A stretch of DNA of 64,000 nt from Lepidodermella squamata (lineage: Eukaryota; Animalia; Gastrotricha): assembly GCA_047495785.1 (NCBI GenBank), contig JBLDXI010000032.1, forward strand, positions 2,666,001 to 2,730,000. Reading direction: 5' to 3'. The translations under genes and the position numbers were made by a program. Positions 24,076-54,562 of the stretch are shown here, piece by piece. Under the pieces are notes generated by a model. It saw nothing but the letters and a program-made list of their open reading frames with translations, was not told the DNA's origin and did no database searches. Each line of letters starts with the position of its first letter. Positions within the stretch are counted from its first letter, which is position 1.

Positions 24076-25580
24076 TCAAGCCAACGATAAACGATGTTGG
24101 CCAGCTTGAGGTTGCTGAGTGGTGGGACGTCGCGTGGATGCGCATACTTGACACGTAACGGCGAGGAAATTCAGAGCAAGACTTGTCGAATCTGTTGACT
24201 GCGAGCGCCAGTTCATGTGGACAGCCCCGCATCGACGAATTGATGCGGCGGTCATGCACAGTTTGGTGCAAACAGCGCATATGCATTGGTTTTCCAGCTG
24301 TGACACGATAACCTCAGGAATGTGTCGCCAATAAAACGGTAGTCTGTAATTACAGTAATAAAATTCATGATTCACCGGAAAAACAGTACTCACAAATTCT
24401 TAACGGTAGATCGAGCCGAAAATTCGAATAACGACGGTATGATTCGACCAAAAACCATAGGCTCAGCCGTGATTTTTCGCATAGTTTCCAAAGATGTGCC
24501 AGATTCTTCACTCGGATTAGAATTCAGCCCACTGATATCGAAATCAGCGTACAATTTGGTTAACTTGTTCACCCAAATTGTATTCAACGGATTTTTTGAG
24601 ATGTCAAGCGTGATAATCGAAGGAGGCACCGCATTAATCACCCTGATCTGGTTGTTGTTCAAAATCAGCGTGCGAACCGATTTTAAATTCATAGCAGATA
24701 TTGGTAACGAGATCAATTGGTTGAATGAAAGGTCGAGGCTTGTCAACTTGTTAGCGCGAGAAAAAATCTCCGCACTGATCGTTTCAATTCTATTCTTGGA
24801 CAATTTCAAAGTTGTCAGATTAGGTATTGATACCAGTTCACGAGGAAATTCGGATAAATTGCAATCCATCAATTCCAATGCAGTCAAACTAGCCAGTTGA
24901 TCAGACCGCGCGAAAGAAATGATGCGGCATTTTTCACACGAAAGTGATAAAACGTAGGTAACTCCTTCGCTCAATCTCTTCAGCACTTTTCCATGAATAA
25001 CTTCAGACTTCTTCAGAACAGAGGTTGCAATAGTTTGCCGACGTTTTGCCGGAACTGCGGGCTGTTCAGCAGGAGGTTGCATAGCATTCGACACAGCTCT
25101 TTTACCATTGCAGTTTTTCACTTTTGAGGCGGGAATTAGCCCTTGCTTTTCTTCAGGAACTGCGTTTTCTTTATCGCATGGATTAATTTTGCCCTTAGTA
25201 GGCAGTTGGCCAATTATGCACAAGTCAGAATTACCATTTTTCGGTGTAGACAAAGATCTCAAGTACTTGATGGCCTTCACGAAACGTTTCAATCCATTGG
25301 TGTCCTTTGCTTGAAGCATTATATCTTGAGCAGCTTTCTTAAAACGCAGAGTGGCTTTGCCTTCTTCGATGAATCGGTCGAAAATCGATGACAAATCTGT
25401 CACATTATAGCTTAAAATCAATTTGGAGACAAATTGCAGCTGAAGTAACCCGGTCTTGGTTAAGGTAAGAACGCCATATTTAGATTTGTCCTTGATCATA
25501 CCAAGCGTGCTTTTGTTATCCGATATCACTATTGAGCATGCTACGGTGATTTCCCCAGAGCATGATGTAATATTAGACAT
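24076..25580 (-). CDS. LRR1: Leucine-rich repeat protein 1 (CRL2 substrate receptor); exons 25580-~24394 and ~24343-24076
   Basis: N-terminal PIF1-like domain (IFDRFIEEGKATLRFK...DIML), LRRs (LTTLKLSKNRI, LTSLDLSFNQL, VRTLILNNNQI), BC/VHL box (IPSLFEFSARSTV) and a Cys-rich tail (CICAVCTKLC...CQVC). Confidence 0.82.
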
Positions 25581-35951: not shown

Positions 35952-37416
35952 ATGGCAGTCCGCTCATGGTTTATTATGCTTGGAATTTTGGTAGCTGGTG
36001 TCTACGCCCTGGATGACTACAAAAATGCTTGTTCTTCGGAGAACACGCCGTTTCCGAGGCAGATTGAAGTCGATCCAAAACCTAAAAAATACCAGAATAT
36101 CGAGCATGGAATGCAGCTATTTCTTGACTATGAAATACCGGTATAATTTCGGTATTGAAATTGGTAGATATACCTATTTTTCCCAATTTAGTGCGATGGG
36201 TTTATCACGGAATTTCGGTTCTTGTCGAGTGAAACTGTGGTAATCTCTCGATATTTTCACTAATTTTCAAAATTATTTGATGATCATTTCTATAAAAGAT
36301 TTGGGGATTGCACTTGGCAGTGTTTCGGCCGGCATTTGTCGATTCTTATCGTTTCACACAAGACTACTACGTCAACGGTTATTCTACAAATGTACCTGGT
36401 GACACCTGGGTAGTTGCTCGGCCAAGGGAGGTGATAATCGTGAGAAAGGGTGACGTCATAGGTAATTTTGGTCATTTGTAATTCATGTCGTTTTAAGGCC
36501 CATTTTTATGTCAGGATTGTTCTATGATGTTTTCAATGCAACCGTCGATCAAGGGAGAGCGTCCGTTCGATCGCTATCTCGAAATCCGGATGAGCCTATT
36601 TACGGCATGCTGCCAAGAAATAAATCTATCCCACTCCGTTCGAAAACAAACTGCCTCGTTTTCATGCGCGACTCGAGCGGAATGATTGCCAATCAAAGTA
36701 TGATTGTTTCGTTTTCCAACTGAACTTGCTGTAATCTCTCTCTAAATTTATAGCGCTCGTCACAGCTACGGAGGGCCAGTTTACGTATCGCGAACCCGCC
36801 CTGTACGTTATGATCTCAAGCATAGCAAGTTAGTTTGAGTAGAGTCATGTTATGTGCAGATTTGAATATTTTTATATCAGATTCTGGATCTTTCTCGTCA
36901 CGTACTATTCACCGGCTTCTCGGGGTGAAAAACGATCCACCGATTGGCGACAATAAATCAAATGATTTTGCGTCAAAGGCAGCAACTAAAACACCGAAAT
37001 TCAGCGACCAAGGCCTGCAGTTCCGAGATTTGAGTAAATAATTCAGATAATGCTGTACTTTGAATTTACACGCCAGTTTTTTAGAATGCAACCTCCTGCC
37101 AAACATGCAAATGCAGGAGTATTGCCAGCACCGATTATCACTGCGTTATTATTTCGATATTCGAGACAGAAAATGCAAGCATTTCATCGGATGTGATACC
37201 AGCGTTCGACCAGGGCAGACCACAATGGCCTACGATAGCAACGTCAATTCTTATTACACCGAACTGTCGTGGAACAACAATTTCGCGACTAAACCGACGT
37301 GTGAACGCATTTGCGGCGATGCGCGTTACCTGCGTCGCGGAACTTCGAGCAGCAAAGCTACTACACATCGGACGACTACGATGAAGCGGCTGTTTACAGC
37401 TATTCCAATTGGATGA
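35952..37416 (+). CDS. Secreted protein: unrecognised N-terminal domain + C-terminal Kunitz/BPTI-like domain (paralog 1, about 7 exons)
   Basis: Signal peptide MAVRSWFIMLGILVAGVYA; spliced IPCDGFITEFRF...GLHLAVFR...VRKGDVIGLFYD...VRSLS...EPALY; Kunitz-like CNLLP...C...RYYFD...C..F.GC...NNF...C...C. Confidence 0.7.
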
Positions 37417-38061: not shown

Positions 38062-39010
38062 ATGGCAAACGCCGCAATTTTCCTGGCTCTAGTTTCACTG
38101 CAAGTTGCATGGGCCGCGGAAGATGCGAAATGCCCGGTTGGTGGCATGTCTTTTCCGGAACATTTCGAGGCAGAAATAACAGAGGATGCTAACCTTGATG
38201 TTCCCGCTCAACTGAGATTTCCATTCTTGGAAGGTGGATTGCAAGTATGTGAGATAATTTCGTTAAATTGCGGCAATTCACGATTCTTTCTAGATTTTTC
38301 TTCACCTAAGAATTCCGTGCAGTGGCCAGATTTCCGAGTACAAGTTTTGGACAGCGAAAAATGTGATAAATGGCCTACATTTAGCTGTTTTCCGAATTAA
38401 CGAAACTGACACCTCGGCTCAACTAATCTCCGACTTTTACATAAATGCCCAGACGACTAGACTAGCGCAGGGCGAGGAGGGCTGGATCAGCTCGCGACCG
38501 AATTCGCCTATCCAAGTCAAACAGGGCGATGTAATCGGCATGTTCTACGACCAACTAGGCGGCGAGACCAGCATTCGATCCCTTTCGCTATCTGTCGATG
38601 ATGTGGAAAATTCTTTTGACACCCTGGTCTACCTGACGTCGGCGAAAGACTTGGTCGACGGGTCGAAGGGCCATGTTTGGCTGGAAGAAGGCATCAAAGT
38701 CAACCGAGTTCCGGCCTTGTACCTAAAGCTCGAAGGCACGAAACCGAAGCAGAACCGCCCCGCCGCCATTCACGTGAAACACATCCCTCAATCTGTAACG
38801 GTTCAATGCGAGCAGCGCCCGTCCCAGTACCACTTATCCGGGCTGGTTTGCGATGGCGAGGTTACCCTGCGATATTTCTACCACGAGAAGACCGGATTTT
38901 GCCGCGAATTCATCCATTGTTCGATTCCTCAGGCGTCGGAAATCGCCGGGTTTTTGACGTACAAAGACTGTATGGTGACGTGCCGACGGAGTCAAAATGG
39001 AGTTGCCTGA
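38062..39010 (+). CDS. Secreted protein: unrecognised N-terminal domain + Kunitz/BPTI-like domain (paralog 2; intron ~38245-38293)
   Basis: Signal peptide MANAAIFLALVSLQVAWA; IPCSGQISEYKF...GLHLAVFR...VKQGDVIGMFYD...IRSLS...VPALY; six-Cys Kunitz-like tail (RYFYHEKTGFCREF.HC...FLTYKDCMVTC). Confidence 0.75.
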
Positions 39011-39198: not shown

Positions 39199-39788
39199 AT
39201 GAAGTCTCTGAAATATCTGATTTTATCTGTTTCAATCGCTTTGATCAGCCAATTCACAGCAGCTAGTAGCAGCGAGTTCACGTGCTACGTTTGCGAGAGT
39301 GAATTTCACAACACAACACAAGATTACGAGAGCGACAAATGCGTCTCGCCGATCGGTAAAATCGAACCGGCGCCGTGCCCACCGATGAAAGGCGGCGCTA
39401 ATGAAAAGTACGGCTGTTTGAAGATTTACACCGTTACGGATGCGCGGACTGAATTCAATCCTCATAAAAATTCGAACAGGTTTAGTACATGGCCGCTCGA
39501 AAATTAATTTATCAGTTCGGTCGAATGTTTTATTAGATACCTGCGAAAAATGTCTCGGCAGTGCGCTTCTTTTGTGGACCCAGTTGTCAAATGCAGCACA
39601 CAACATGGAGCTAACAGTCAAACTCTATCTTGGTATTTTATTTTTATTTTTTATAATATTTATTTTATTAATTTTTATCTATTAGCTTTTGCGACTCTCG
39701 TGACTGCAACTCCTCACCAGGCCGTAAAGGAGCTAATTCTATCCTGACTTTGGCGTTGCCAACATTGGCGCTATTCAGATTCCATTGA
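39199..39788 (+). CDS. Ly6/uPAR three-finger (quiver/sleepless-like) GPI-anchored protein, 3 exons
   Basis: Signal peptide, then CYVC...C...C...CLK...RQC...C...CFCDSRDCN and a hydrophobic C-terminus (ILTLALPTLALFRFH). Confidence 0.82.
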
Positions 39789-40074
39789 TTATCCGTCTTG
39801 GAGACTGAGCTAAATTATCCAAAATATATGAATTCGATGAATAAATATTTTAAGAGTTCGAGAGGTTCCATTCTGTCCATTCTGTCCGGTGTTTTTGTGT
39901 TCTTCACGAAAAGCTATTATCAACAATTATCAGTTGAGAAAATGTTTACGTCAAATTTGCTATCTTGCAAATGATAAAATTTGGTGAGGTCGCGGAGCTA
40001 GCGTAATCTTTTACCAGAGCCTACTTTTTTGGAGGTTAATTCGCGAAAACAGGCCCCAAGTTTCAATCTGTACC

Positions 40075-42029
40075 ATGAAGAGTCAACTTTATTTAATTTT
40101 CGTCATTTTTGCCCTACTCGCCCAAACCAAAGGTCTGCTAGAAATTATCGCTGATTTTCGGCTGATTTCGTTTTGAAAATAGGCAACAGTGACGAGGTCG
40201 ATGAGGGCTTCAGTGAAGCAGAGTCTTGCAATGAGCAACAGTATTCGGCTAATAGGCGGGAACACGTCGTAAGCTTTAAATATAAATACCAAAAACTAAA
40301 CGATTTCTATTACCTATCTAATTAATCTACAGCTGATGTATGACGCCCACTTTCGAGACACTGTTTACAACTTGGCTATCCCAGTTGACGGCCTTATTAA
40401 AGCTATCATTGATTCAGCTCCTTTTCAGCGGCTTCAAAGCATTCGACAAATGGCTATGGTCGCCAAGGTATATCCCACAGCTAAGCATACGCGTTTTGAA
40501 CACTCTATTGGGTTAGTAAAATTTTAACCGAAAATCCGTCTTAATATTGGATTGAATTGGTAGAACTTACTACTTGGCCAATCAGTTCATTATCAAGCTT
40601 CGCGAAACTTTACCCGAGCATGAGCGGTTCGAGGTGATATCCGAGCGAGACAAAACCGCAGTTGAAATCGCCGCGTTGTGTCACGATTTGGGCCATGGAC
40701 CTTTCTCTCATCTTTTCGAAGACGTCCTTAAAGCTAAAAACAACACATGGAATGTAAATCAAATAATATAGTTATAACAAGATTAATTTTCCCCCATAAC
40801 TTCAGCATGAGGCAGGATCCGAGGCAATGTTGCGCAGGGTGCTTGCATATGAGACAGTTCGTGAATGGCTAGCTAGGGAACCTCTTTTCCTGAAAACAGA
40901 TGCTGAAGTTGAAGATTACCTCATTTTCATCCGGCAACTGATTCGCGGGAAGCCGAGGAAACATGCCGCCTATTTTGCCGAAAAGCCCTTCCTCCTTGAA
41001 ATAGTTTCGAACCACCAAAATGGTCTAGATGTAGATAAAATCGACTATTTGAAACGCGACTTGCAATTCAGCCGCGGAATCACCGGCATCGTTGATCATC
41101 GCCGCATTTTCATTAACGCGAGGCTGATCAAGGATGACGAAGGGCATTATCAAATGGCCTTCCGAACTAAGGTTGCCGAGGAACTGGCCGATGTCTTCCA
41201 ATGGCGATACTACCTTCACCGCTACGTTTGCTTCCACCCAACCGTTCGTCTCTTGGAGCAAATGTATAAAAGCCATAGCTTTTATGGCTTCTTTAATAAT
41301 TTTGGTTATTTTTATAGGATGATTGATTTGTTTTTCGCTTCGGAAGAACTTGTCGCTAAAACTATGTCCTGGCCCTCGGATTGGATGAGCACGTTCGGAA
41401 CTGGGTCAGATTCAGTGGATAAGCTGATGAAGCTCGACGACGAGACATTCTTCTCGATAATCAAGCTCTTTGCCCCGGCAAATCACCCAGCGGCTAAATT
41501 GTATCACCGGCTCGAGCATCGATTGCTATACAAAAAATCATGCACAATGACGCTATACTCGCCAAAGGATGATGACCAGTTTTACAAGGCCAATTTTAAA
41601 GCTGAGGCTGACAAAAGTGAAATCGAAAGCCGCAAATATGTCATTGTGGTATGCGAATCAAAAACAGAAATGTAAATTCAGGAACTTTTTATTTTTAAAT
41701 TTTTTCAGGTTACCAGATTTCGATTTGGCAGCGAACCATCGGCGACAGCTCGCGAATTCAGATTGTTTTTGAAAGAGGAAAATCCGAAGATCTACCTTCC
41801 CCAAGAAGAGGTCAGTTGCCTTCGAAAATGTTGGAGTACGTATTTTGGAAAATCCTTTTTTCAGGATCTTTTCTACCAGCGCTACTCCAGCTTGAAGAAA
41901 ATCGATCAATACGCTCAAATTTACGTATTTTGGCGCGGTGATCTCGATGACCCACAGAAAGAAACCTTGGAGGACATTGTTTGCCCAGGTTTCGCGCGTA
42001 AAAATGACGCTGTCATGGAACAGTACTAA
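40075..42029 (+). CDS. SAMHD1: SAMHD1-like HD-domain dNTP triphosphohydrolase with predicted N-terminal signal peptide; exons 40075-40132, 40183-40268, 40333-40511, 40564-40753, 40806-41263, 41318-41648, 41709-42029
   Basis: [58 protein letters not shown]. The two upstream exons splice in frame and encode [20 protein letters not shown]|NSDE. Confidence 0.88.
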
Positions 42030-44361: not shown

Positions 44362-45313
44362 TTAATCAGCTTTCTTAGCTTCCAGGCCGCGTTTCTTCGG
44401 CGAGATGTACGTGCCGATGAAGTAGTGGATGAACAGGACGAAATAGCTGAAATAAACGACGAAAGTCCGGTGAACCTGGAAAAGTGTTTCGGTGCCGCAT
44501 GATTCGCCCTTAATCGCCATTTTATAATAGACGGTTCCTGTTATAACGCAGGCAAGGATCATCTGAATTATCTGCATGGTTGTGATTGAAATATTGACGA
44601 TTTTCGGGCATCGGTAACCAGCAGCGCGAGTCATCTAAAATTCGAAAAAATATCGTTTAATTTAAGGAGAAATTTTGGATTTCCAAAACTTACATAATAA
44701 GTATACATGAAGGCGTGGACGGTATAATTCATAGTCCTGGAAAAGTGATAAAATTATTTCAAGTTAAAGGTAATTAGTTAGGGCAAATTTACATATAAAA
44801 AAGGCCAGAACCGACCCAAGACGGGTAAGAATAAAAGACGAAAACAACGACAGAGGCGTGGTGATACCAGTGCAGCAAAATTAGCTCTTGTTTACGTAAA
44901 ACAATGAAGATCGTATCGATGAGTTCAGGAATTTTGCTGAGTAGAAACATCGAGCCCCAGAAAGAAACAACTTCGTGTTGATACAAACTCTCGTCACAGA
45001 TCGTAAACATGGCGCCGTGTTGAGCAAGCATTCGATACATGTAAGGCACGGTGCGGAAAGAGGCGATTATGCTAAAAACGGCTGTGATAAAATTCCAGAA
45101 TGTCAACGGGCCGCGTAGGCTGAATCGCGGCCGATCACGCATGATCCACTTGATTGAGAAAATCACGATCACGTAGACTATTGCGATCACCCAACTGAGC
45201 CAAATATTGCTCTGAGCCCATTTCCTAAAACCAGCTGCGTCATGATTTCGCTCGAAGTCAAATCCTTTATGACCGGATAGGATGTCGTACAAAGACCGGT
45301 TAGTTGAAGTCAT
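44362..45313 (-). CDS. ELOVL6: Very-long-chain fatty acid elongase (ELOVL6/3-like), 3 exons
   Basis: FLLSKIPELIDTIFIVLRKQELILLHWYHH; MNYTVHAFMYTYY; ITTMQIIQM; YFSYFVLFIHYF; C-terminal KKAD ER-retrieval signal. Confidence 0.9.
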
Positions 45314-45569
45314 TATAGTTAATGATCTAAGATTACAAAAATGGTAGGTTAAAGCATTTTTCTGTTTGTTACTAAAACCGATAACAGAATAAAAAATGAG
45401 CACAATATTCTTCACATTTTTCACCTCTATCTCTCTCACCAGTTTCAGTTAACAAACATCACTGATCTCACTTCATCACTAGCTTCATTAGTTCATCTCA
45501 ACGCTCTCTTCTGCCAGCGACTAGGCGTCAACAATAGGCGAGCGAAAGAGGTACACATTATGCATTTGT

Positions 45570-46005
45570 TTAGACTAGCAGGCGTTCGATCGACTGACGA
45601 ATGTTCTGGATCAGAGGGTTCAGCTGAGAACCTTTGTTAGTTGTGATCGAGCACGAAATAACCGGACGTGAGACGCCGCAAGCGCGACCGAGAGCTTCCT
45701 TTGATCGGACGAATACGTAGGGCACGTTCTAGACAAAAAACAAAAGTAGATCAATTAACTGAAAGCTCAGATTGTATTACCTTGTCCTCGCACAACAACG
45801 GCAAATGCATGACGATTTCAATCGGTTCAGTATCAGCAGCCAGAATGATCAGCTCGGACAAGTTTCGGTTCAGAGTCTTGGTTGCCTCGTTAGCACCCTT
45901 GCGGAGCTGGTTGTAGTGCATAGCCTGCTGTACCATGTCCAAAATCTTCTTGGTCAGCTCAGGATCGGCCAGAGGATAGGCCTTGGGGTTAACTTCATCG
46001 GCCAT
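45570..46005 (-). CDS. SNU13: 15.5K/NHP2L1 kink-turn binding protein; exons 46005-45781, 45728-45570
   Basis: [10 protein letters not shown]...[15 protein letters not shown]...[21 protein letters not shown]|[24 protein letters not shown]...IERLLV. Confidence 0.96.
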
Positions 46006-46156
46006 TTTGAGTTAACAAATTGAAATCAACAAAAAACACTAAAATAAAGAAATGAATCAATATAAGTCACATTTAAATCTGACAAATACAATAATTTCGT
46101 TAGAAACAGTTAGACAAGAATTACTTTCAACACAAAAAAATAGAAAAGGCATTCGT

Positions 46157-47206
46157 TCAATGTTCATCAGTACCATTTGACGTCGGAACGCCAGTTTCCG
46201 CTACACCGTTCTCGATCAAACCTTCGACATCGGAGCCAGATTTCGGTGAAGATGAAACATCTGAGTAAGAGGAGGCACCATCGCTGTCTAGCTCATCGTC
46301 GTCTCCGCCGATAGCCTTCCAGAAAGCAGTGACAACCTTCTCGGCATAGGCGTGTCGGTCTTCTCCCTCCGGCATCGCTTGACAACGCTCCTTCATTGTA
46401 GCAAGACGAGAAAATAAAGATTCAAATTGTTCAGTGTCATCTGCGATCCTATTTTGAGCTGAGCTGGATTGCACATCACCTCCGCTTGGCGCAGCTGTGT
46501 CATTGAGAGACGATGAAGATGAGCTGCACGAGGATGAGAGGCGTTGGAACTGGTGACCGGCAGCATTGCTCCGATCTTCAACAAATGCTGCTGCCACACT
46601 GATAGCCGAGAGAATTCTACTGCAGCCATACTCCTCGGCTTCTCGTCCATCTTCACAAAATGACTCGCCGGGGCCATCTTCAGGTTCCATTTCTACGATT
46701 TCCACCTCGTTATGTACACACCACTTAGCGAAGTCGTTCTTTTGCTGGATTGAGCCAGATTCTAAGGCGCCAAAAGAAGGCACGCCTAGAAGAATGCGGC
46801 TCTCGGGAGACCATTTAGTTTTCAACGATTCGACAGATCGTTTGATCGCTGTCATCTCTTCCTCGCCTTCAACTTCGGCCTTCGAATGATAAGCAACAAT
46901 GAAAGAGCAGACTGGAGGAAGTATTGCATCGGAGGATAGCTGATAAGCAGTACGAAGACTGTTTTCAGAGAGAAGACTGTGTAAATTATCGGAAACTAGA
47001 AGACGCAGACGGACGAAGTGATATTTCGAATCGATTTCGATTTCGCTTGTCAAAATGGAACATATTGCACCATCAAAGGTCACTACGTCAGTTTCTTCTA
47101 CTTGCTTGTCACCGCTCAAATCTTTGATCAACGTTTGGAGAAATTCCCGATTTCGGCCATAAATTAAACAGCATGCATTTTTCGACTCCTTGGGCTTTGC
47201 TGCCAT
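46157..47206 (-). CDS. AAGAB: Alpha- and gamma-adaptin-binding protein p34
   Basis: IDSKYH, WCVHNEVEIVEM, EEYGCSRILSAI and C-terminal FESLFSRLATMKE...RHAYAEKVVTAFWKAIGGD. Confidence 0.85.
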   Translation of the reverse strand: MAAKPKESKNACCLIYGRNREFLQTLIKDLSGDKQVEETDVVTFDGAICSILTSEIEIDSKYHFVRLRLLVSDNLHSLLSENSLRTAYQLSSDAILPPVCSFIVAYHSKAEVEGEEEMTAIKRSVESLKTKWSPESRILLGVPSFGALESGSIQQKNDFAKWCVHNEVEIVEMEPEDGPGESFCEDGREAEEYGCSRILSAISVAAAFVEDRSNAAGHQFQRLSSSCSSSSSSLNDTAAPSGGDVQSSSAQNRIADDTEQFESLFSRLATMKERCQAMPEGEDRHAYAEKVVTAFWKAIGGDDDELDSDGASSYSDVSSSPKSGSDVEGLIENGVAETGVPTSNGTDEH

Positions 47207-47911
47207 ATCAATAAAATACCTCTACAAGGCATTTAGAAAGGCAAAAGATAGAGGAATAAGTATAGCTTAGTTGAGCAAGCGTAGGCTGACGCATAGTGTA
47301 TATTTGAAAAAGTGAGGTGGGCATTAGAATAAGGTCACTGACAAGTGACAAGGTAAGTTGGGTATCGAATTGAGGTCATCTCGCACCTCAAAGCGATCAC
47401 GCCAGCTGCGCGGTGGACGCGTTTCTAAACGCCGCATGCTTGCGGCAGCGCTGTCCTAAAAAATACTGCGGCTGAAAAACATTTATGAATTAACTATACC
47501 AAGTTTTTTCAAAATATCACTTCTGGAAAGATTAAGATTTACAAGGTTGAAATTTGTGCGGTAATGCAAAAGCATAACGCGCTATTTTTTTGAAAGGCTG
47601 ATTTTTTCAAGTTTTCAGCGGTTTTTCAGTCATGTGATCTGAGCTGTGCCGGCGCCAGAGAGCAGACTGCGGACTCCCAGGAATCTCGAGTCTTGGGCCT
47701 TACAATTTTTAGGTTACTTCAGACATAAATCCACAATAAATAGTGACTGCCAAGGCGCGCGCCTGGATAAATCTAGCAACGGAGTCTTCCGGTATCCTTT
47801 AAGTGTACCTACCGTATTTCGCATTACTCATGTCCTATTGCTTTGCGCATTTTTTATTTGGATGCCATTGTCGTTTCCTTGTGTCACTTTAGTCCATTGA
47901 ATAGACGAAAT

Positions 47912-49165
47912 ATGATTTCGCGACATGCGCTGTTACTTCGCAGCGGGTGCTTTCTGCGTTGCACAGTTGCATTTGAATCCGGAAATCTTAGACAGTTGCA
48001 TTCTGGAGTTGTTCTCAATGCGCAATCCGCGGAAAGCAGCAAAGATTCAAAGTCGGAATCTTCTTCAAAAGCTGTCAAAATCAGCAGAGCAATGAGAGAG
48101 TATGTTCGCAAGGCGGAAGAATACACAACTCTGATTGGCAACGAGCAAACTGACTTTGAATTGGGCAAGCGTCACTTATCAAACATTATGGGCTTTGAAG
48201 GTGAAGATATTTCTCAGCAACAAATCGACGCTGCGATTTCATATTTATTGCCATCCGGTTTGTTTGAGCCTCGTGCTCGTCCAATGATGAAGCCGCCAGA
48301 AGAAATATTTCCCAAACGCAAGCCGGCTCAGTTTGGCATTGACGGCAGACCTTACCACTTTTTATTCTACACTGGCAAACCCAACTTCTATGAATTGATG
48401 AATGAAGGCGCTATGGTATTGACTCGGTTGAGCGAAGTCTCTCGTAGAGCCCCGATAGCTCAAGGGGACGCTGAAAAACAGAAAAGAGGATTAGATTTAG
48501 CGGGTTGGTTTTCCATCTCTCGATTTCTTTCCTGTCAACAGATTTTCAATTTAGGTAGCGATTGGATTGACCTGCCATCTCTACGTTCGATGACTTTGGA
48601 AAATATTACTGAAGAGGATTATAAGGTTTTCGTCGGCTTGCTGTCTCGAATTGCTTCGCATCCTAATGGCGAAACAGCCCGCCAATTTCTGTTCCGATTC
48701 CGCCAACAGCTAACTGCAGAAAAAGCATCACAGCTCCGCCTACCAGTTTTTACTGATGCGGAAGGGAAGCAATATGTTGATAGTTTTGGAAGCCGCAAGT
48801 GGGCCCGCGCTGACGTTCGTTTATTTGCCGAAGGCACAGGCAAAGTGAAGATCAATGGGAAGTCACTGCTAGAATATTTCCCTGGGATATACGAACGTGA
48901 GCAAGTTTTGTTCCCCCTTCAGTTCACCGGATTGTTGGGAAAGGTTGATTTTGTCGCTTCGATCAACTCAGGAGCAAGTGGAAGCAATGCAGAAGCTGGA
49001 GCGTTGAGGCTAGCATTAGCCCGCTCGTTATGCAGCCTTTGCCCCGACGATGTTGTCGACTCATTGCGTTTAGCTGGTTTGCTCACTCGTGATAACCGTC
49101 GTAGGGAACGCAAGAAGCCTGGTCAAGTCGGTGCCCGCAGGAAATTTACCTGGGTCAAGCGTTAA
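47912..49165 (+). CDS. MRPS9: Mitochondrial ribosomal protein uS9m (51-nt intron 48504-48554)
   Basis: Transit-peptide-like N-terminus; FELGKRHLSNIMG, YLLPSGLFEPRARPMMKPPEEIFP, GLLTRDNRRRERKKPGQVGARRKFTWVKR. Confidence 0.95.
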   Translation: MISRHALLLRSGCFLRCTVAFESGNLRQLHSGVVLNAQSAESSKDSKSESSSKAVKISRAMREYVRKAEEYTTLIGNEQTDFELGKRHLSNIMGFEGEDISQQQIDAAISYLLPSGLFEPRARPMMKPPEEIFPKRKPAQFGIDGRPYHFLFYTGKPNFYELMNEGAMVLTRLSEVSRRAPIAQGDAEKQKRGLDLAGWFSISRFLSCQQIFNLGSDWIDLPSLRSMTLENITEEDYKVFVGLLSRIASHPNGETARQFLFRFRQQLTAEKASQLRLPVFTDAEGKQYVDSFGSRKWARADVRLFAEGTGKVKINGKSLLEYFPGIYEREQVLFPLQFTGLLGKVDFVASINSGASGSNAEAGALRLALARSLCSLCPDDVVDSLRLAGLLTRDNRRRERKKPGQVGARRKFTWVKR

Positions 49166-49287
49166 AAATGACCCTTATCGAATAAATTTTTGGAGTCTTG
49201 TTTTATATCTGATTATACTTAGCCTTGAACATTTGATTTTAATAGGTTTTTAAAACCTTGACTCTGCATATTGGTTCTTAAAACTAA

Positions 49288-51804
49288 ATGCTTAATCGAT
49301 TACTCGCGAGGATGGCATCATCTTCGACTACTTCTAACTTCACGAACCGCCTTGCGCATGAGAAGTCGGCTTATTTACTACAACACGCTAAGAACCCTGT
49401 CGATTGGTATCCATGGGGACAGGAAGCCTTCGAGAAGGCTAAACGGGAAAATAAGCCGATTTTTCTCTCAGTTGGCTATTCAACATGCCATTGGTGTAGG
49501 TCTATAGATACCAAATGCATATTGTAATTATTCAAGTTACCATTTTCAGGCCATGTTATGGAACACGAGTCATTTGAATCGCAAGAAATTGCTGATTATT
49601 TGAATGAAAATTACGTTGCCATCAAGATGGATCGCGAGGAGCGACCTGACATCGATAAGCAATACATGACCTACGTTCAGGCAATGTCTGGTCATGGCGG
49701 TTGGCCGATGTCAGTTTGGCTAACCCCTGATTTGAAGGGAATGATGGCTGGCACTTATTATCCTCCTGAGGACAACCCACATTACGGCCGCCCCGGTTTC
49801 AAAACAATTCTGAAGAAATTTGCTGAAATGGTAAGCTAACCTGAAATATGTAAATACCTTCAAATTTCATTAATTACAGTGGAAGTCAAATCGAGGTAAA
49901 CTCGAAGATCAGGCGCGCATGCTGACTGAAACTTTGGGATCATCTTCGCTGGAAATACTCGAGGGCGATCAGCTTCCATCTGATGACGCTCCGAAAAGAT
50001 TAGCCCGTGGTCTTGGCGGTCGATTTGATCGTAATTTTGGCGGTTTTTCGAAGGCCCCGAAATTTCCGCAGCCCGGCAATTTGAATTTCTTATTGCGATA
50101 TCACGAATGGAGCAAGTTGATCGGCGAAGTTGATAATGCCAGCGCTGCCTCGGTCTTTTTCACCCTTGAAATGATGGCCCGTGGCGGAATTTACGACCAT
50201 GTCGGTAAAGGCTTCGCTCGTTATTCCACCGACTCTGTATGGCACGTGCCTCATTTCGAAAAAGTGAGAAAATTGGAGAAATATTGAAATTTTATGATGG
50301 ATTTTACGAATTTCAGATGTTGTATGATCAAGGTCAACTAGCTGTCTGCTACAGTGAAGCTTTAGCGGTATGTCATTACCAGTTTTTGGTTTGATAGTGA
50401 ATCAAGGAAATCTCATAACAGATGACTAACAACCCACTATTCGCCCGAGTTCTTGATGGCATTGTAACATACATGCTTCGCGATCTTCGCCATCCATTAG
50501 GTGGATTCTACTCAGCCGAAGATGCTGATTCATACCCAGTGGGATCAGACGGTAAACCGGCGAAGAAGAAAGTTGAGGGTGCTTTCTACGTTTGGGAATA
50601 CGACGAAATTCAGACAATTTTCAAAGGTCTGACTGTTACCGGCGAATCAACTCCTCTTGCCGAGTTTTTCTCGAAAATTTTCGACGTCCGTGAGCATGGT
50701 AACGTCGATCCGGCGCAGGACCCGCACGATGAGCTGAAACACAAGAACGTGTTGATTCAACAAAAAGCGCTTGAAGATTTCGCGAAAGATTTCAAAATGA
50801 GCGAGCAGAAAATTTTAGCTGAAATCGACCGCTGCTGTGAAATTTTGGACAAAGAGCGTTCGAAACGACCGCGGCCTCATCGCGACGAAAAATTCGTCAC
50901 CTCATGGAACGGAATGGCGATTAGCGGCCTATCCCAGGCGGCTATGGCTACTCAAAGTAGTGAATTGGTTGAAGCAGCTGTTAAAACAGCCGAATTCATC
51001 CGCCAATACATGTATGTCGAGGCTGAGGGTAAATTGTGGCGAACAGCTTATGCTGAAAAAGCTGAAGATGGCTCGATGAAAATTACCCAAATTTCTGAAC
51101 CGATTCCTGGTGTTTGCATGGATTATTGCTGTTTGATCGCAGGTCTTATCGATTTATATGAAGCCTCTTTCGACAGCAACTGGCTGCTCTGGGCCGCTCA
51201 GTTGCAAGACGTTCAAAACAAGCTGTTTTGGGATAACTCCCCTGACCGCTTGTCGTACTTCGTCTCTGATAACCCTCAACTTCTATTCAAGCTGAAAGAC
51301 GAGCAAGACGGAGCTGAACCGGGTAGCAACTCGCTGTCTTGCATGAATTTGATTCGATTGGCCGAGTATTTGAGCCGCGACGATTTGCATCGAATGGCCG
51401 AGGGAATTCTGACGACTTATTCAGAGCTGATTTCTCAAATGCCTATCGCCGTTCCGCATTTGCTGAGTGCCTTTTTACGCTTCAAGACCGACGGTCATCG
51501 CTACGTCATCTTCGGAAATGGTGACGTAAGTTTGAAGCAATCCGCCTTAATTTTGTACTGAATAAATTATTTTGTTCTGTTTTAGTCGATAATGAAAGCA
51601 ATTAATTCGAAATTCGATCCTTTCAAGTCGATTTATCGCGCTGATGACGGATTTTTCGCTAAGCGACCGCCATGGCTCGACGAGCTGCGCCAGAAAATCG
51701 ACCCTAAATTCGTTGGCGTAGTTGCTACTGATCCGAAAGGTCGCTATAAACAACTTTCCAGTGAAACCGAAGCCATGCAATTCATGGAGAAATTCGATTT
51801 CTAA
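49288..51804 (+). CDS. SPATA20: SPATA20/SSP411 (thioredoxin-like + six-hairpin glycosidase-like), about 6 exons
   Basis: [33 protein letters not shown]|[70 protein letters not shown]. Confidence 0.95.
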
Positions 51805-51958
51805 CAAGAACATTATTTTTGATTAACCAACAAATAGGACTGATTTTTCGAACTGAACTTCACGTGCATCACAGGCTTTCTTTCTATTTACCTATTTTTT
51901 AAATAACCAATAATTTTCATTAATTATTGCATTATATAGTGGATTTATTAAGACAAAA

Positions 51959-54562
51959 ATGGGAAACAGTGACACGAAATTGAGTTTCAGAAAAAGTGTC
52001 ATAGAATTGACTACAAAGACTAAACCGGTCGATGCAAGCGATGAAGCGTTTTGGCAGCAATTTTGGACTACCCCAGTACCCAGTGTTCAAGACATGTTTG
52101 TCCTCATCCCACCCGCCGAAATTCGAGCATTACGCGAAGAATCACCTTCAAATCTAGCGACGCTGTGCTGTAAAGCAGTTCAGCGCCTAGTCCATGCAGC
52201 TGACGGCAATTGCGTAACGACAAATGACCAGCAAGCGGCGTTGAATGCGGTTCGTTTACTGACTCGAATTTTGCCGTATTTGTACGAAGATTCGGACTGG
52301 CGTGGGTTTTTCTGGTCGACAACCGGCGGGAGTACCGGGTCGACGGTCGACGGGAAAGCGGATGATCAAGTTTTGGCGAAATCGCTGCTAATGGCCATTT
52401 CAGACCTGTTATTCTGCCCGGATTTCACTGTTTCTACCCCGAAACGACCGGCTGGCGCACCGGAGGTTGCTGATGATATTCGCTCCCTCGACAGTTGCGA
52501 GTACATCTGGGTCGCCGGGGTTGGTTGCGTGCAGGCTCAACCTAGCACTAAGCAGCAGGAACAAAATCGAACTGAGTTATTACGACTTTTATTAGCTTGC
52601 TGTTCAGAGCCGGTCTATCTGACTGCCGGAGACCCTCGCGCACAGGACAACCCTTGGATTCGCTATTTCACCTCTAAAAGTAATCGGCATGTTTTGCCCC
52701 TATTCGCTTCGCTGTTGAACACCGTCATTACCTATGAGCCAGTTGGCTATATGCCGTATAACCACTGGCTGGTGACTGATCACCGCGAAATCCTGGTTGA
52801 AATGGCAATTCAAGTTCTGAGTGTTTGCCTCGACTATTCACTGCCGCCTGATGTTCCCGAGGCAAGTTCCGGGCCGAACCCGGTTGACTGCGACAATTTA
52901 TTCGTGCATTACCTGGCCCGGATCCATCGCGAGGAAGATTTTGAACTGATTATGAAGGGTTTAGTCCGGCTTTTGAACAACCCGCTAATGCAGACCTATT
53001 TACCCGGTTCTGCAAAGAGAATTCGTTTCCACCAGGAAATTTTGGTGTTATTCTGGAAGTTATGTGATGTCAACAAGAAATTCTTGTACCACACGTTGAA
53101 AACAAGTGAAGTGCTGAACATCTTCGTACCGGTGCTGTACTTTTTGAACGACGCAAGAGCTGATCAAACTCGCGTTGGACTGGTTCACGTTTGCGTTTTC
53201 ATTTTGTTGATGCTGTCGGGTGAGCGTAATTTCGGCGTCCGCCTTAACAAGCCTTACACGCAAAAATTAGCGATGGACATACCGATTTTCAGCGGAACTC
53301 ATGGCGATTTGCTGGTTGTCAGCCTTCATAAGGTTATTTCAGCCGGCCATTCGCGACTTCAGCCACTGTACGAATGTATGTTGACTGTTCTGGTCAATGT
53401 TTCGCCATATCTGAAGACACTGTCCATGGTATCAGCGAATAAATTGCTGCATTTATTCGAGTCATTTTCCTCGCCGTCATTTCTCTATTCGTCACCCACT
53501 GCCCATCGCTTAGTATTTTACCTGATGGAAATCTTCAACAATTTGGTGCAGTATCAATTCGATGGCAATGCAAATCTTGTCTACTCCATGATTAGAAAAC
53601 GACAGATTTTTCATAATTTGGCGAATCTCGCGGCGTCGCAGGATGGTATTAGCCGGGTTTTAGCTGGTCGAAGAGGCGGAGCGGCAATTCAGGCAACAAC
53701 TTCGCCAGCTATTGCAGCAGTTGCGGTCGCTGAGAGACCCCCTGGTACAGCAAGGCCGAGCGAAAGTGGCAGCGCAGGTCCCCATGTCGAACCTCCAGCT
53801 AGCCCGGCCTTACTACCGGGTACAGCTAACGAGCAAATCGTTGAAGGGGCCGTTGTTCCAACTGATGCTCCGTCAGGTTCGATCAAGGCGTCGCTAGCAT
53901 CCACGCCTCAGTTATTGACAATGACTGAGAAGCAGACGTTGGATGGTAGCCGGTCGTTGCCGCCCGATGCGGCGGCAGCTAACCAGCAGGTTGAACCACC
54001 TACGTCGCCAAGCCCGCATGGTAATAACGCGCCTCTCGTTAGGCACCCATCGACTGGATCGTTAGCTTCAAGCACCCATGGCGCTCTAAGCACCACCCAT
54101 TCGTTAGCCGGGCAATGGCAACCTACCCCAGAGTGGGTCCAGTCTTGGAAAAAGAAGCTCCCGCTGCAAACTGTCATGAGATTGCTTCAAGTTCTAGTAC
54201 CTCAAGTCGAGAAGATGTGCGTTGAAAAGTAAGTTGTTGTATTCCTTGGTTCATGATTTTCAATTTATATCCGGTGGATTTCAGGGGGTTGACTGATGAA
54301 ACCGAAATCATTCGCTTCCTGCAATCTGGAACGCTGGTCGGATTATTACCCGTACCCCACCCCATTCTCATTCGCAAGTACCAACCGAATGCTGGAACAT
54401 CCGTTTGGTTCAGGACCTACACCTGGTAAGAATTTTCGTAGCATCACATTTTCATTCTCAAAATTGCTGGTTTTTAGGGGCATAATTTATATCAGAAATA
54501 CGGACCCTCCAATATGGTACGATACGGACGTTAAAATGTTCGAAATTCAACGCATTTCATAA
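51959..54562 (+). CDS. HID1: HID1 dense-core vesicle/Golgi protein; exons 51959-~54228, ~54284-54425, ~54478-54562
   Basis: MGNSDTKLSFRK (myristoylation motif), ESPSNLATLC, LSGERNFGVRLNKPY, QYQFDGNANLVYSMIRKR, LPLQTVMRLLQVLVPQVEK, DPPIWYDTDVKMFEIQ. Confidence 0.96.

Follow-up and report, generated by a model that had tools for sequence, protein, structure and literature searches.

A 64,000-nucleotide stretch of the gastrotrich Lepidodermella squamata (assembly GCA_047495785.1, contig JBLDXI010000032.1, positions 2,666,001 to 2,730,000 of the forward strand; hereafter the window) holds one intact gene for a SAMHD1-like enzyme at 40075-42029 on the plus strand, and the first exon of this gene reads as a signal peptide. 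Reading the sequence and joining the frames gave a gene of 8 exons with a product of 522 residues. SAMHD1 enzymes have been studied as intracellular guardians of deoxynucleoside triphosphate (dNTP) pools, in connection with antiviral restriction, Aicardi-Goutieres syndrome and DNA repair. The best single reading of the present gene is that it encodes a candidate secretory-pathway member of this family, and judged by its sequence such a form is a well-supported gene-model prediction. We think it rather likely that a signal-bearing mRNA is made and that a real secretory-pathway form results, possibly beside a trans-spliced cytosolic isoform. We infer that introns 1 and 2 are spliced and that the peptide works as a signal, and likewise where the enzyme ends up and what it acts on; a luminal, lysosomal or granule location is as open as an extracellular one. 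The features of the gene that bear on this reading are, in order:

40037-40074, plus strand: probable 5' untranslated region (UTR), without an upstream ATG past its acceptor-like sites
40075-40132, plus strand: exon 1, start codon and signal-peptide-like sequence, ending in phase 1 at the predicted cleavage site
40133-40182, plus strand: intron 1 (50 nt), GTCTGC...AAATAG, phase 1, GC 0.36
40183-40268, plus strand: exon 2, acidic linker, with Arg-Arg four residues (EHVL) before Met 40336 and without an in-frame ATG
40269-40332, plus strand: intron 2 (64 nt), GTAAGC...CTACAG, phase 0, GC 0.23, with a strong donor
40333-40511, plus strand: exon 3, start of the HD domain, with the F-R-D motif, the A1-site Asp and Gln, and the first metal His (RFEHS)
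40336, plus strand: alternative start Met in exon 3, with C at -3
40564-40753, plus strand: exon 4, HD motif (Pfam HD domain, E=1.5e-5), with H148/D149 corresponding to human H206/D207
40806-41263, plus strand: exon 5, catalytic core with DVDKIDY (human D309/D311/K312/Y315), from alignment with SAMHD1 in the PDB, and the segment with Cys, Phe and Pro at human Y374, Q375 and K377
41264-41317, plus strand: intron 5 (54 nt), GTATAA...TTATAG, GC 0.24, in frame and stop-free
41318-41648, 41709-41810 and 41865-42029 (stop included), plus strand: exons 6-8, C-terminal lobe, with a weak HD_assoc_2 match

All seven introns have GT-AG boundaries, lengths of 50-64 nt and a GC content of 0.23-0.37. An earlier, sequence-only reading of this DNA had placed a signal-like peptide at an ATG in ACC-ATG context at 40075, and had joined it in frame, across the 50-nt and 64-nt introns and via an acidic linker, to the HD domain. 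The peptide and its context (ACC-ATG-A, with A at -3) are present in the sequence as described, and the coordinates of both introns are exact. The same reading remarked that the track of open reading frames (ORFs) misses this gene model, which is indeed the case because the exons are short. The 282-codon ORF that does appear in the ORF list spans intron 5 and includes 18 intron-encoded residues, because this intron is in frame and stop-free. The lengths of exons 1 and 2 (58+86 nt) add up to a multiple of three, and the linker between the signal-like peptide and the start of the HD domain, also joined in frame, has 29 residues, 8 of them acidic and 2 basic. Two acceptor-like sites stand close to ATG 40075: TTTTTTGGAG followed by G, ending at 40036 (38 nt before the ATG), and GAAAACAG followed by G, ending at 40053 (21 nt before it). 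A Pfam search and a check of the residues agree with the earlier statement that there is neither a SAM domain nor an evident nuclear localization signal (NLS). Just 49 residues precede the HD domain, with no Pfam match among them, and the spliced protein has no basic NLS-like cluster, no second hydrophobic segment and no KDEL-type C-terminal ending.

The 5' extension exceeds chance, and the statistics lend good support to a gene model with two additional exons. When 0-2 introns are allowed, ATG 40075 is the sole upstream ATG that lengthens the frame by more than 5 residues, and the signal-like peptide is retained whichever other splice sites are chosen from it, as long as the donor lies at 40133 or later. 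Exon 2 has a GC content of 0.52, compared with 0.36 and 0.23 in the flanking introns and 0.37 in the upstream intergenic sequence. Using a codon log-odds score trained on 5771 codons of the window (coding mean 0.141, non-coding mean -0.09), we obtained 0.228 per codon for exon 2 in the required frame. This is above the coding mean, the best of the six frames, and matched by 3.7% of stop-free non-coding windows; the best-scoring frame is the one compatible with both exon 1 and exon 3. The boundary of intron 2 was recovered by a hypothesis-blind scan for short AT-rich stretches bounded by GT and AG and set between coding-like sequences, and reading through this intron, to TAA 40323-40325, gives a codon score of -0.27 at a GC content of 0.22.

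Chance occurrence of such a start was assessed in two further ways. Among 691 ATGs in sequence classified as non-coding, three open an equally strong signal-like peptide, and ATG 40075 is one of the three. In a null test, every AG of the window on both strands was taken as a potential acceptor and scored for whether an upstream ATG, joined to it via 1-2 GT-AG introns of 45-70 nt, gives a signal-like N-terminus. About 3% of the AG sites allow one. The codon score of the real path was reached at 28 of 6788 AG sites, and those listed among the 28 are true signal or anchor sequences of neighboring genes or fall within long ORFs. For AG sites preceded by 300 nt of mostly non-coding sequence, the score of the path is matched at 1 of 1776, where the gene at 35952 has its genuine signal peptide.

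The start itself fits its surroundings. All 7 well-supported starts in the window carry a purine at -3; ATG 40075 has A there, and Met 40336 has C. The stop of the upstream gene lies 286 nt from ATG 40075 and 547 nt from Met 40336, and the shorter distance is nearer to the 189 nt that separate genes B and C of the window. Were a leader spliced to exon 2 instead, the first AUGs would be out of frame. If exon 2 is a real exon, the start codon can come only from exon 1, since every ATG within exon 2 lies out of frame.

The signal-peptide call was made with heuristics, namely positive charge in the n-region, 7-15 uncharged hydrophobic residues in the h-region (Kyte-Doolittle hydropathy), and a polar c-region whose residues at -3 and -1 are small. 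The peptide from ATG 40075 has Lys2 in its n-region, 12 uncharged hydrophobic residues in its h-region and T-K-G (-3 to -1) before Asn21 in its c-region, and by these heuristics all three regions are those of a classical cleavable signal peptide. In the best 11-residue window of the h-region the mean hydropathy is 3.14, which exceeds that of three neighboring signal peptides. The peptide has the appearance of a cleavable signal rather than an anchor, because the spliced protein lacks a second hydrophobic segment. Predicted cleavage after Gly20 coincides with the phase-1 intron 1, and a phase-1 intron at the cleavage site is a common layout of signal exons. The sequence-only reading had proposed that this copy was retargeted to the secretory pathway to act on extracellular or luminal nucleotides. 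The retargeting is partly supported, by the statistics of the two extra 5' exons and by the signal-peptide anatomy of the N-terminus; extracellular action reaches further than entry into the secretory pathway and stays a conjecture.

Membership of the SAMHD1 family was established by searches against structures and sequences. Among 28 matches in the PDB, 27 are SAMHD1 proteins or relatives, including C. elegans ZK177.8, and one is named only 'HD domain-containing protein' (E from 6e-11 to 3e-8). A phmmer search of 1.8 billion representatives returned 1102 relatives, 76 of them at E<=1e-10, and the best-scoring ones, which are 37-40% identical, read as vertebrate SAMHD1-like proteins, some in tandem fusions. 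No close relative was found: the phmmer search gave none above about 48% identity, on partial stretches; a word-based search and a search of JGI metagenome contigs gave none; and proteins of this genome are absent from the protein collections searched. Over the core the identity is about 30-37%. In an alignment with 74 full-length members the mean identity to the family is 0.30, compared with a family median of 0.37, which places the protein among the most divergent members. It retains 63 of the 73 columns that are at least 85% conserved in the family.

The conserved columns include the catalytic center. With human numbering anchored on the 626-residue full-length chain 7ujn, all four metal ligands are retained (H105, H148, D149 and D248 of the model, corresponding to human H167, H206, D207 and D311), as are H210, H215, H233, K312, Y315, D319, R366 and H370, and D137 and Q142 of the A1 site. 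The SAM domain is dispensable and is missing in the C. elegans and fly orthologues, so that membership stands despite its absence here. From its residues, the protein is a real and probably active SAMHD1-family enzyme, and an unusual one.

Other conserved positions are changed. The ribose-gate residue Y374 is replaced by Cys (the family column is 86% Tyr) and L150 by Met (91% Leu); further changes are R145 to Gln, G151 to Ala, Q375 to Phe and K377 to Pro, and by eye the residues aligned to K116, V117 and N119 also differ. According to the structural study of the C. elegans enzyme (PMC10485159), Tyr374 and Leu150 select for deoxyribose, and Asp137, Gln142 and Arg145 read the guanine of allosteric site 1. 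The residues of the deoxyribose-selecting pocket, Tyr374 and Leu150, are thus not kept in our protein, and a strict dNTP specificity is doubtful, while its place in the fold family stands. Loss of the gate Tyr, Arg145 and Lys377 suggests that the enzyme is less strict about the sugar and that its activation by nucleotides is altered or lost.

We compared the predicted enzyme with characterized relatives. With human, mouse and pig SAMHD1 (PDB 7ujn, 4bzb, 5yhw and others) it shares the HD-domain fold family and the catalytic residues. In contrast to these, it has no SAM domain or NLS; it has a probable signal peptide and an acidic pro-region instead, together with Y374C, L150M, Q375F, R145Q and K377P. 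C. elegans ZK177.8 (PDB 6pwy) and other SAM-less invertebrate orthologues likewise consist of the HD domain with a short N-terminus, and the family is a dGTP-activated tetrameric dNTPase (PMC10485159). However, ZK177.8 keeps the ribose-gate Tyr325 and the allosteric residues, has no signal peptide and is not reported to be secreted, whereas the protein described here has Cys at the gate and a secretory-looking N-terminus.

Several observations weigh against a secretory form. No transcript, orthologue or paralogue against which the junctions could be checked was present in the databases searched, and the signal-peptide call is a heuristic one. The mature protein has an odd number of cysteines (5) and a single N-glycosylation sequon (NNT at Asn167), so that it bears no positive mark of an extracellular protein. 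Intron 1 is the weakest link of the gene model. The strength of its donor was judged against about 20 other donors in the window; a blind intron finder gave too few unambiguous introns for a weight matrix. As the sequence-only reading had already cautioned, the donor GTCTGC at 40133 is weak: it resembles none of these others, which are of the GTAAG-, GTAAA-, GTAAT-, GTATG-, GTATA-, GTTAG-, GTGAG- and GTCAG-types, with GTCT absent. The acceptor of intron 1, GAAAATAG, is purine-rich and atypical. Exon 1 has a non-coding-like codon score of -0.13, which is uninformative because 19 hydrophobic codons hold little information. Met 40336 follows the acceptor ending at 40332 at a distance of 3 nt, but this acceptor has a donor partner, GTAAGC, lying 64 nt ahead of it. 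Met 40336 also stands five residues ahead of the F-x-D motif, and in about 12 of the 74 family members the protein begins at a similar place, 3-10 residues ahead of it.

The family as a whole also speaks for caution. A look at the N-termini of the family found a credible signal peptide in none of the 150 best representatives, and the few hydrophobic N-termini among the 150 look like mis-called or truncated models. In the literature searched, the characterized SAMHD1 orthologues (human, mouse, C. elegans, fungal, trypanosome and plant) all appear in intracellular roles and no secreted SAMHD1 was found, in line with the earlier remark that such a function is not known to have been described for the family. 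The prior for a secreted SAMHD1 is low, because none of the 150 representatives bears a signal and the literature holds no secreted SAMHD1.

How starts are arranged in this genome bears directly on the choice between readings. Most well-defined genes of the window have a (T)nAG acceptor-like site 1-20 nt before the ATG with no paired donor, for example those at 25580 (minus strand), 39199, 47206 (minus strand), 51959, 56431 and 61361. This pattern of unpaired acceptors is consistent with widespread spliced-leader (SL) trans-splicing; the window itself yielded neither an SL RNA gene nor a match to any other Rfam family. The pattern opens the way to an alternative that we hold to be unlikely, in which the enzyme is an ordinary intracellular one. 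A leader would be trans-spliced at the acceptor ending at 40332, translation would start at Met 40336, and the upstream 'exons' would be outron, their signal-like ORF and splice sites being fortuitous or non-functional. An acceptor 1-20 nt ahead of the ATG is what most window genes have, a start at Met 40336 would yield a short N-terminus as in many SAM-less relatives, the first donor is weak, and studies of the family have always placed it inside the cell. However, this account needs a series of coincidences: a consensus-like donor, GTAAGC, that stands exactly 64 nt ahead of the acceptor, an 86-nt coding-like segment in frame, a rare signal-like ATG, and a sum of 58+86 nt that is a multiple of three. 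A good cis donor upstream of an acceptor normally converts an outron into an intron, which argues against an outron here, and Met 40336 has C at -3.

An account with two products overlaps both the secretory reading and the intracellular one as a sub-case, and we rate it as less probable still. Here a cis-spliced secretory form would be made beside a cytosolic or nuclear form that starts at Met 40336 after trans-splicing of a leader at 40333. Neither of the two start arrangements is damaged and both agree with what is usual in the window, and the weak first donor would render cis-splicing inefficient; yet the strong donor of intron 2 should favor cis-splicing whenever the transcript includes exon 2.

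That exon 2 is an untranslated 5' UTR exon seems improbable. The leader or cap would then be joined at 40183, and the protein would be made from Met 40336 after a 23-codon upstream ORF (uORF). The ATGs at 40201 and 40231 do open a 23-codon out-of-frame ORF whose TGA overlaps Met 40336 (TGATG, 40334-40338), a known layout for re-initiation, and an exon-like composition alone is no proof of translation. Against this, the codon score is best in the frame shared with exon 1 and exon 3 (0.20-0.23, compared with -0.07 in the uORF frame), and the other leaders in this compact genome are very short. It is most improbable that exons 1 and 2 form a separate small gene for a secreted peptide (66 residues, with the Arg-Arg site and TAA 40323-40325) directly upstream of an independently trans-spliced SAMHD1-like gene: the read-through ORF does stay open to 40325, but the read-through part is intron-like (GC 0.22, codon score -0.27), the stop lies only 7 nt from the acceptor of the next gene with no room for a 3' UTR, and the sole poly(A)-like hexamers (40279-40286) are upstream of the stop.

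The secretory reading implies the following course of events. Translation of the mRNA, or of at least one isoform, would begin at ATG 40075. Exon 1 would act as a cleavable signal peptide, with co-translational entry into the endoplasmic reticulum and cleavage near residue 20 (after Gly20). Exon 2 would then form a short acidic pro-region, with Arg-Arg just ahead of the ancestral start of the HD domain, and might be removed at Arg-Arg. With its metal and catalytic center intact, the enzyme would hydrolyze nucleoside triphosphates (NTPs) to nucleoside and triphosphate, working in the secretory pathway, in a lumen or outside the cell. A changed or missing response to nucleotide activators would suit a compartment that lacks GTP or dNTP activators. 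Such a gene would likely have arisen when a former trans-splice acceptor, 3 nt before the ancestral Met, captured upstream exons.

In its fullest form, which we think less likely than not, this would be the first exported SAMHD1-family enzyme: a pre-pro-protein with a signal, an acidic pro-piece and Arg-Arg cleavage, acting extracellularly or within a secretory or digestive lumen as a hydrolase that converts NTP to nucleoside in one step, and which through Y374C, R145Q and K377P may take both ribo- and deoxyribonucleotides without nucleotide activators. Apyrases/NTPDases, 5'-nucleotidases and ENPPs are secreted nucleotide-hydrolyzing ecto-enzymes. The exported enzyme might share with them the job of removing extracellular or luminal nucleoside triphosphates, but their fold and chemistry are unrelated, and an HD-domain triphosphohydrolase frees nucleoside and inorganic triphosphate in one step. 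If the prediction is true, evolution can put the SAMHD1 fold to new use as an ecto- or luminal nucleotidase, the protein is a natural variant in which the contributions of Tyr374 and the allosteric sites can be probed, and the gene illustrates how, in a trans-splicing genome, an acceptor before an old start codon can capture new upstream exons.

Part of the window can be placed beside a related genome. Positions 44365-54426 are collinear with ENA metagenome contigs of a related species (ERZ23486787, ERZ27333047 and others), with genes for ELO, L7Ae/SNU13, an adaptin-binding protein, mitochondrial S9, a SPATA20-like thioredoxin protein and HID1, the last being 77% identical. Otherwise HID1 shows about 54% identity to proteins from echinoderms, molluscs, ticks and vertebrates, which gives no signal for any one phylum. 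Synteny stops at about 44.3 kb. Upstream of this point the related contig has sulfotransferase and trypsin-like genes; in the window, some 2.3 kb with no evident gene separate the end of synteny from the SAMHD1-like gene. No syntenic SAMHD1-like orthologue was found in the related ENA contigs collinear with 44365-54426.

On the other side of the gene, the three genes upstream on the same strand each begin with a clear signal peptide. Those at 35952-37416 and 38064-39010 (plus strand) are paralogous multi-exon genes with the signal peptides MAVRSWFIMLGILVAGVYA and MANAAIFLALVSLQVAWA, and both have a Cys-rich C-terminal region with a weak, sub-threshold Kunitz/BPTI match (E=0.0014). The third, at 39199-39789 (plus strand), is a small three-exon gene whose product begins with the signal peptide MKSLKYLILSVSIALISQFTA, continues as a Cys-rich body and closes with a hydrophobic C-terminal tail; AATAAA follows at 39840. 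The layout resembles that of Ly6/uPAR or glycosylphosphatidylinositol-anchored proteins, with no Pfam match. At the DNA level, the signal exon of this third gene does not resemble exon 1 of the SAMHD1-like gene. The idea that the signal exon was copied from a neighboring gene that also starts with MKS was rejected, as the DNA similarity is no better than that of shuffled sequence. The window also holds animal genes for NDST, a ZU5-UPA protein, LRR1 and HID1, and the genome is very compact.

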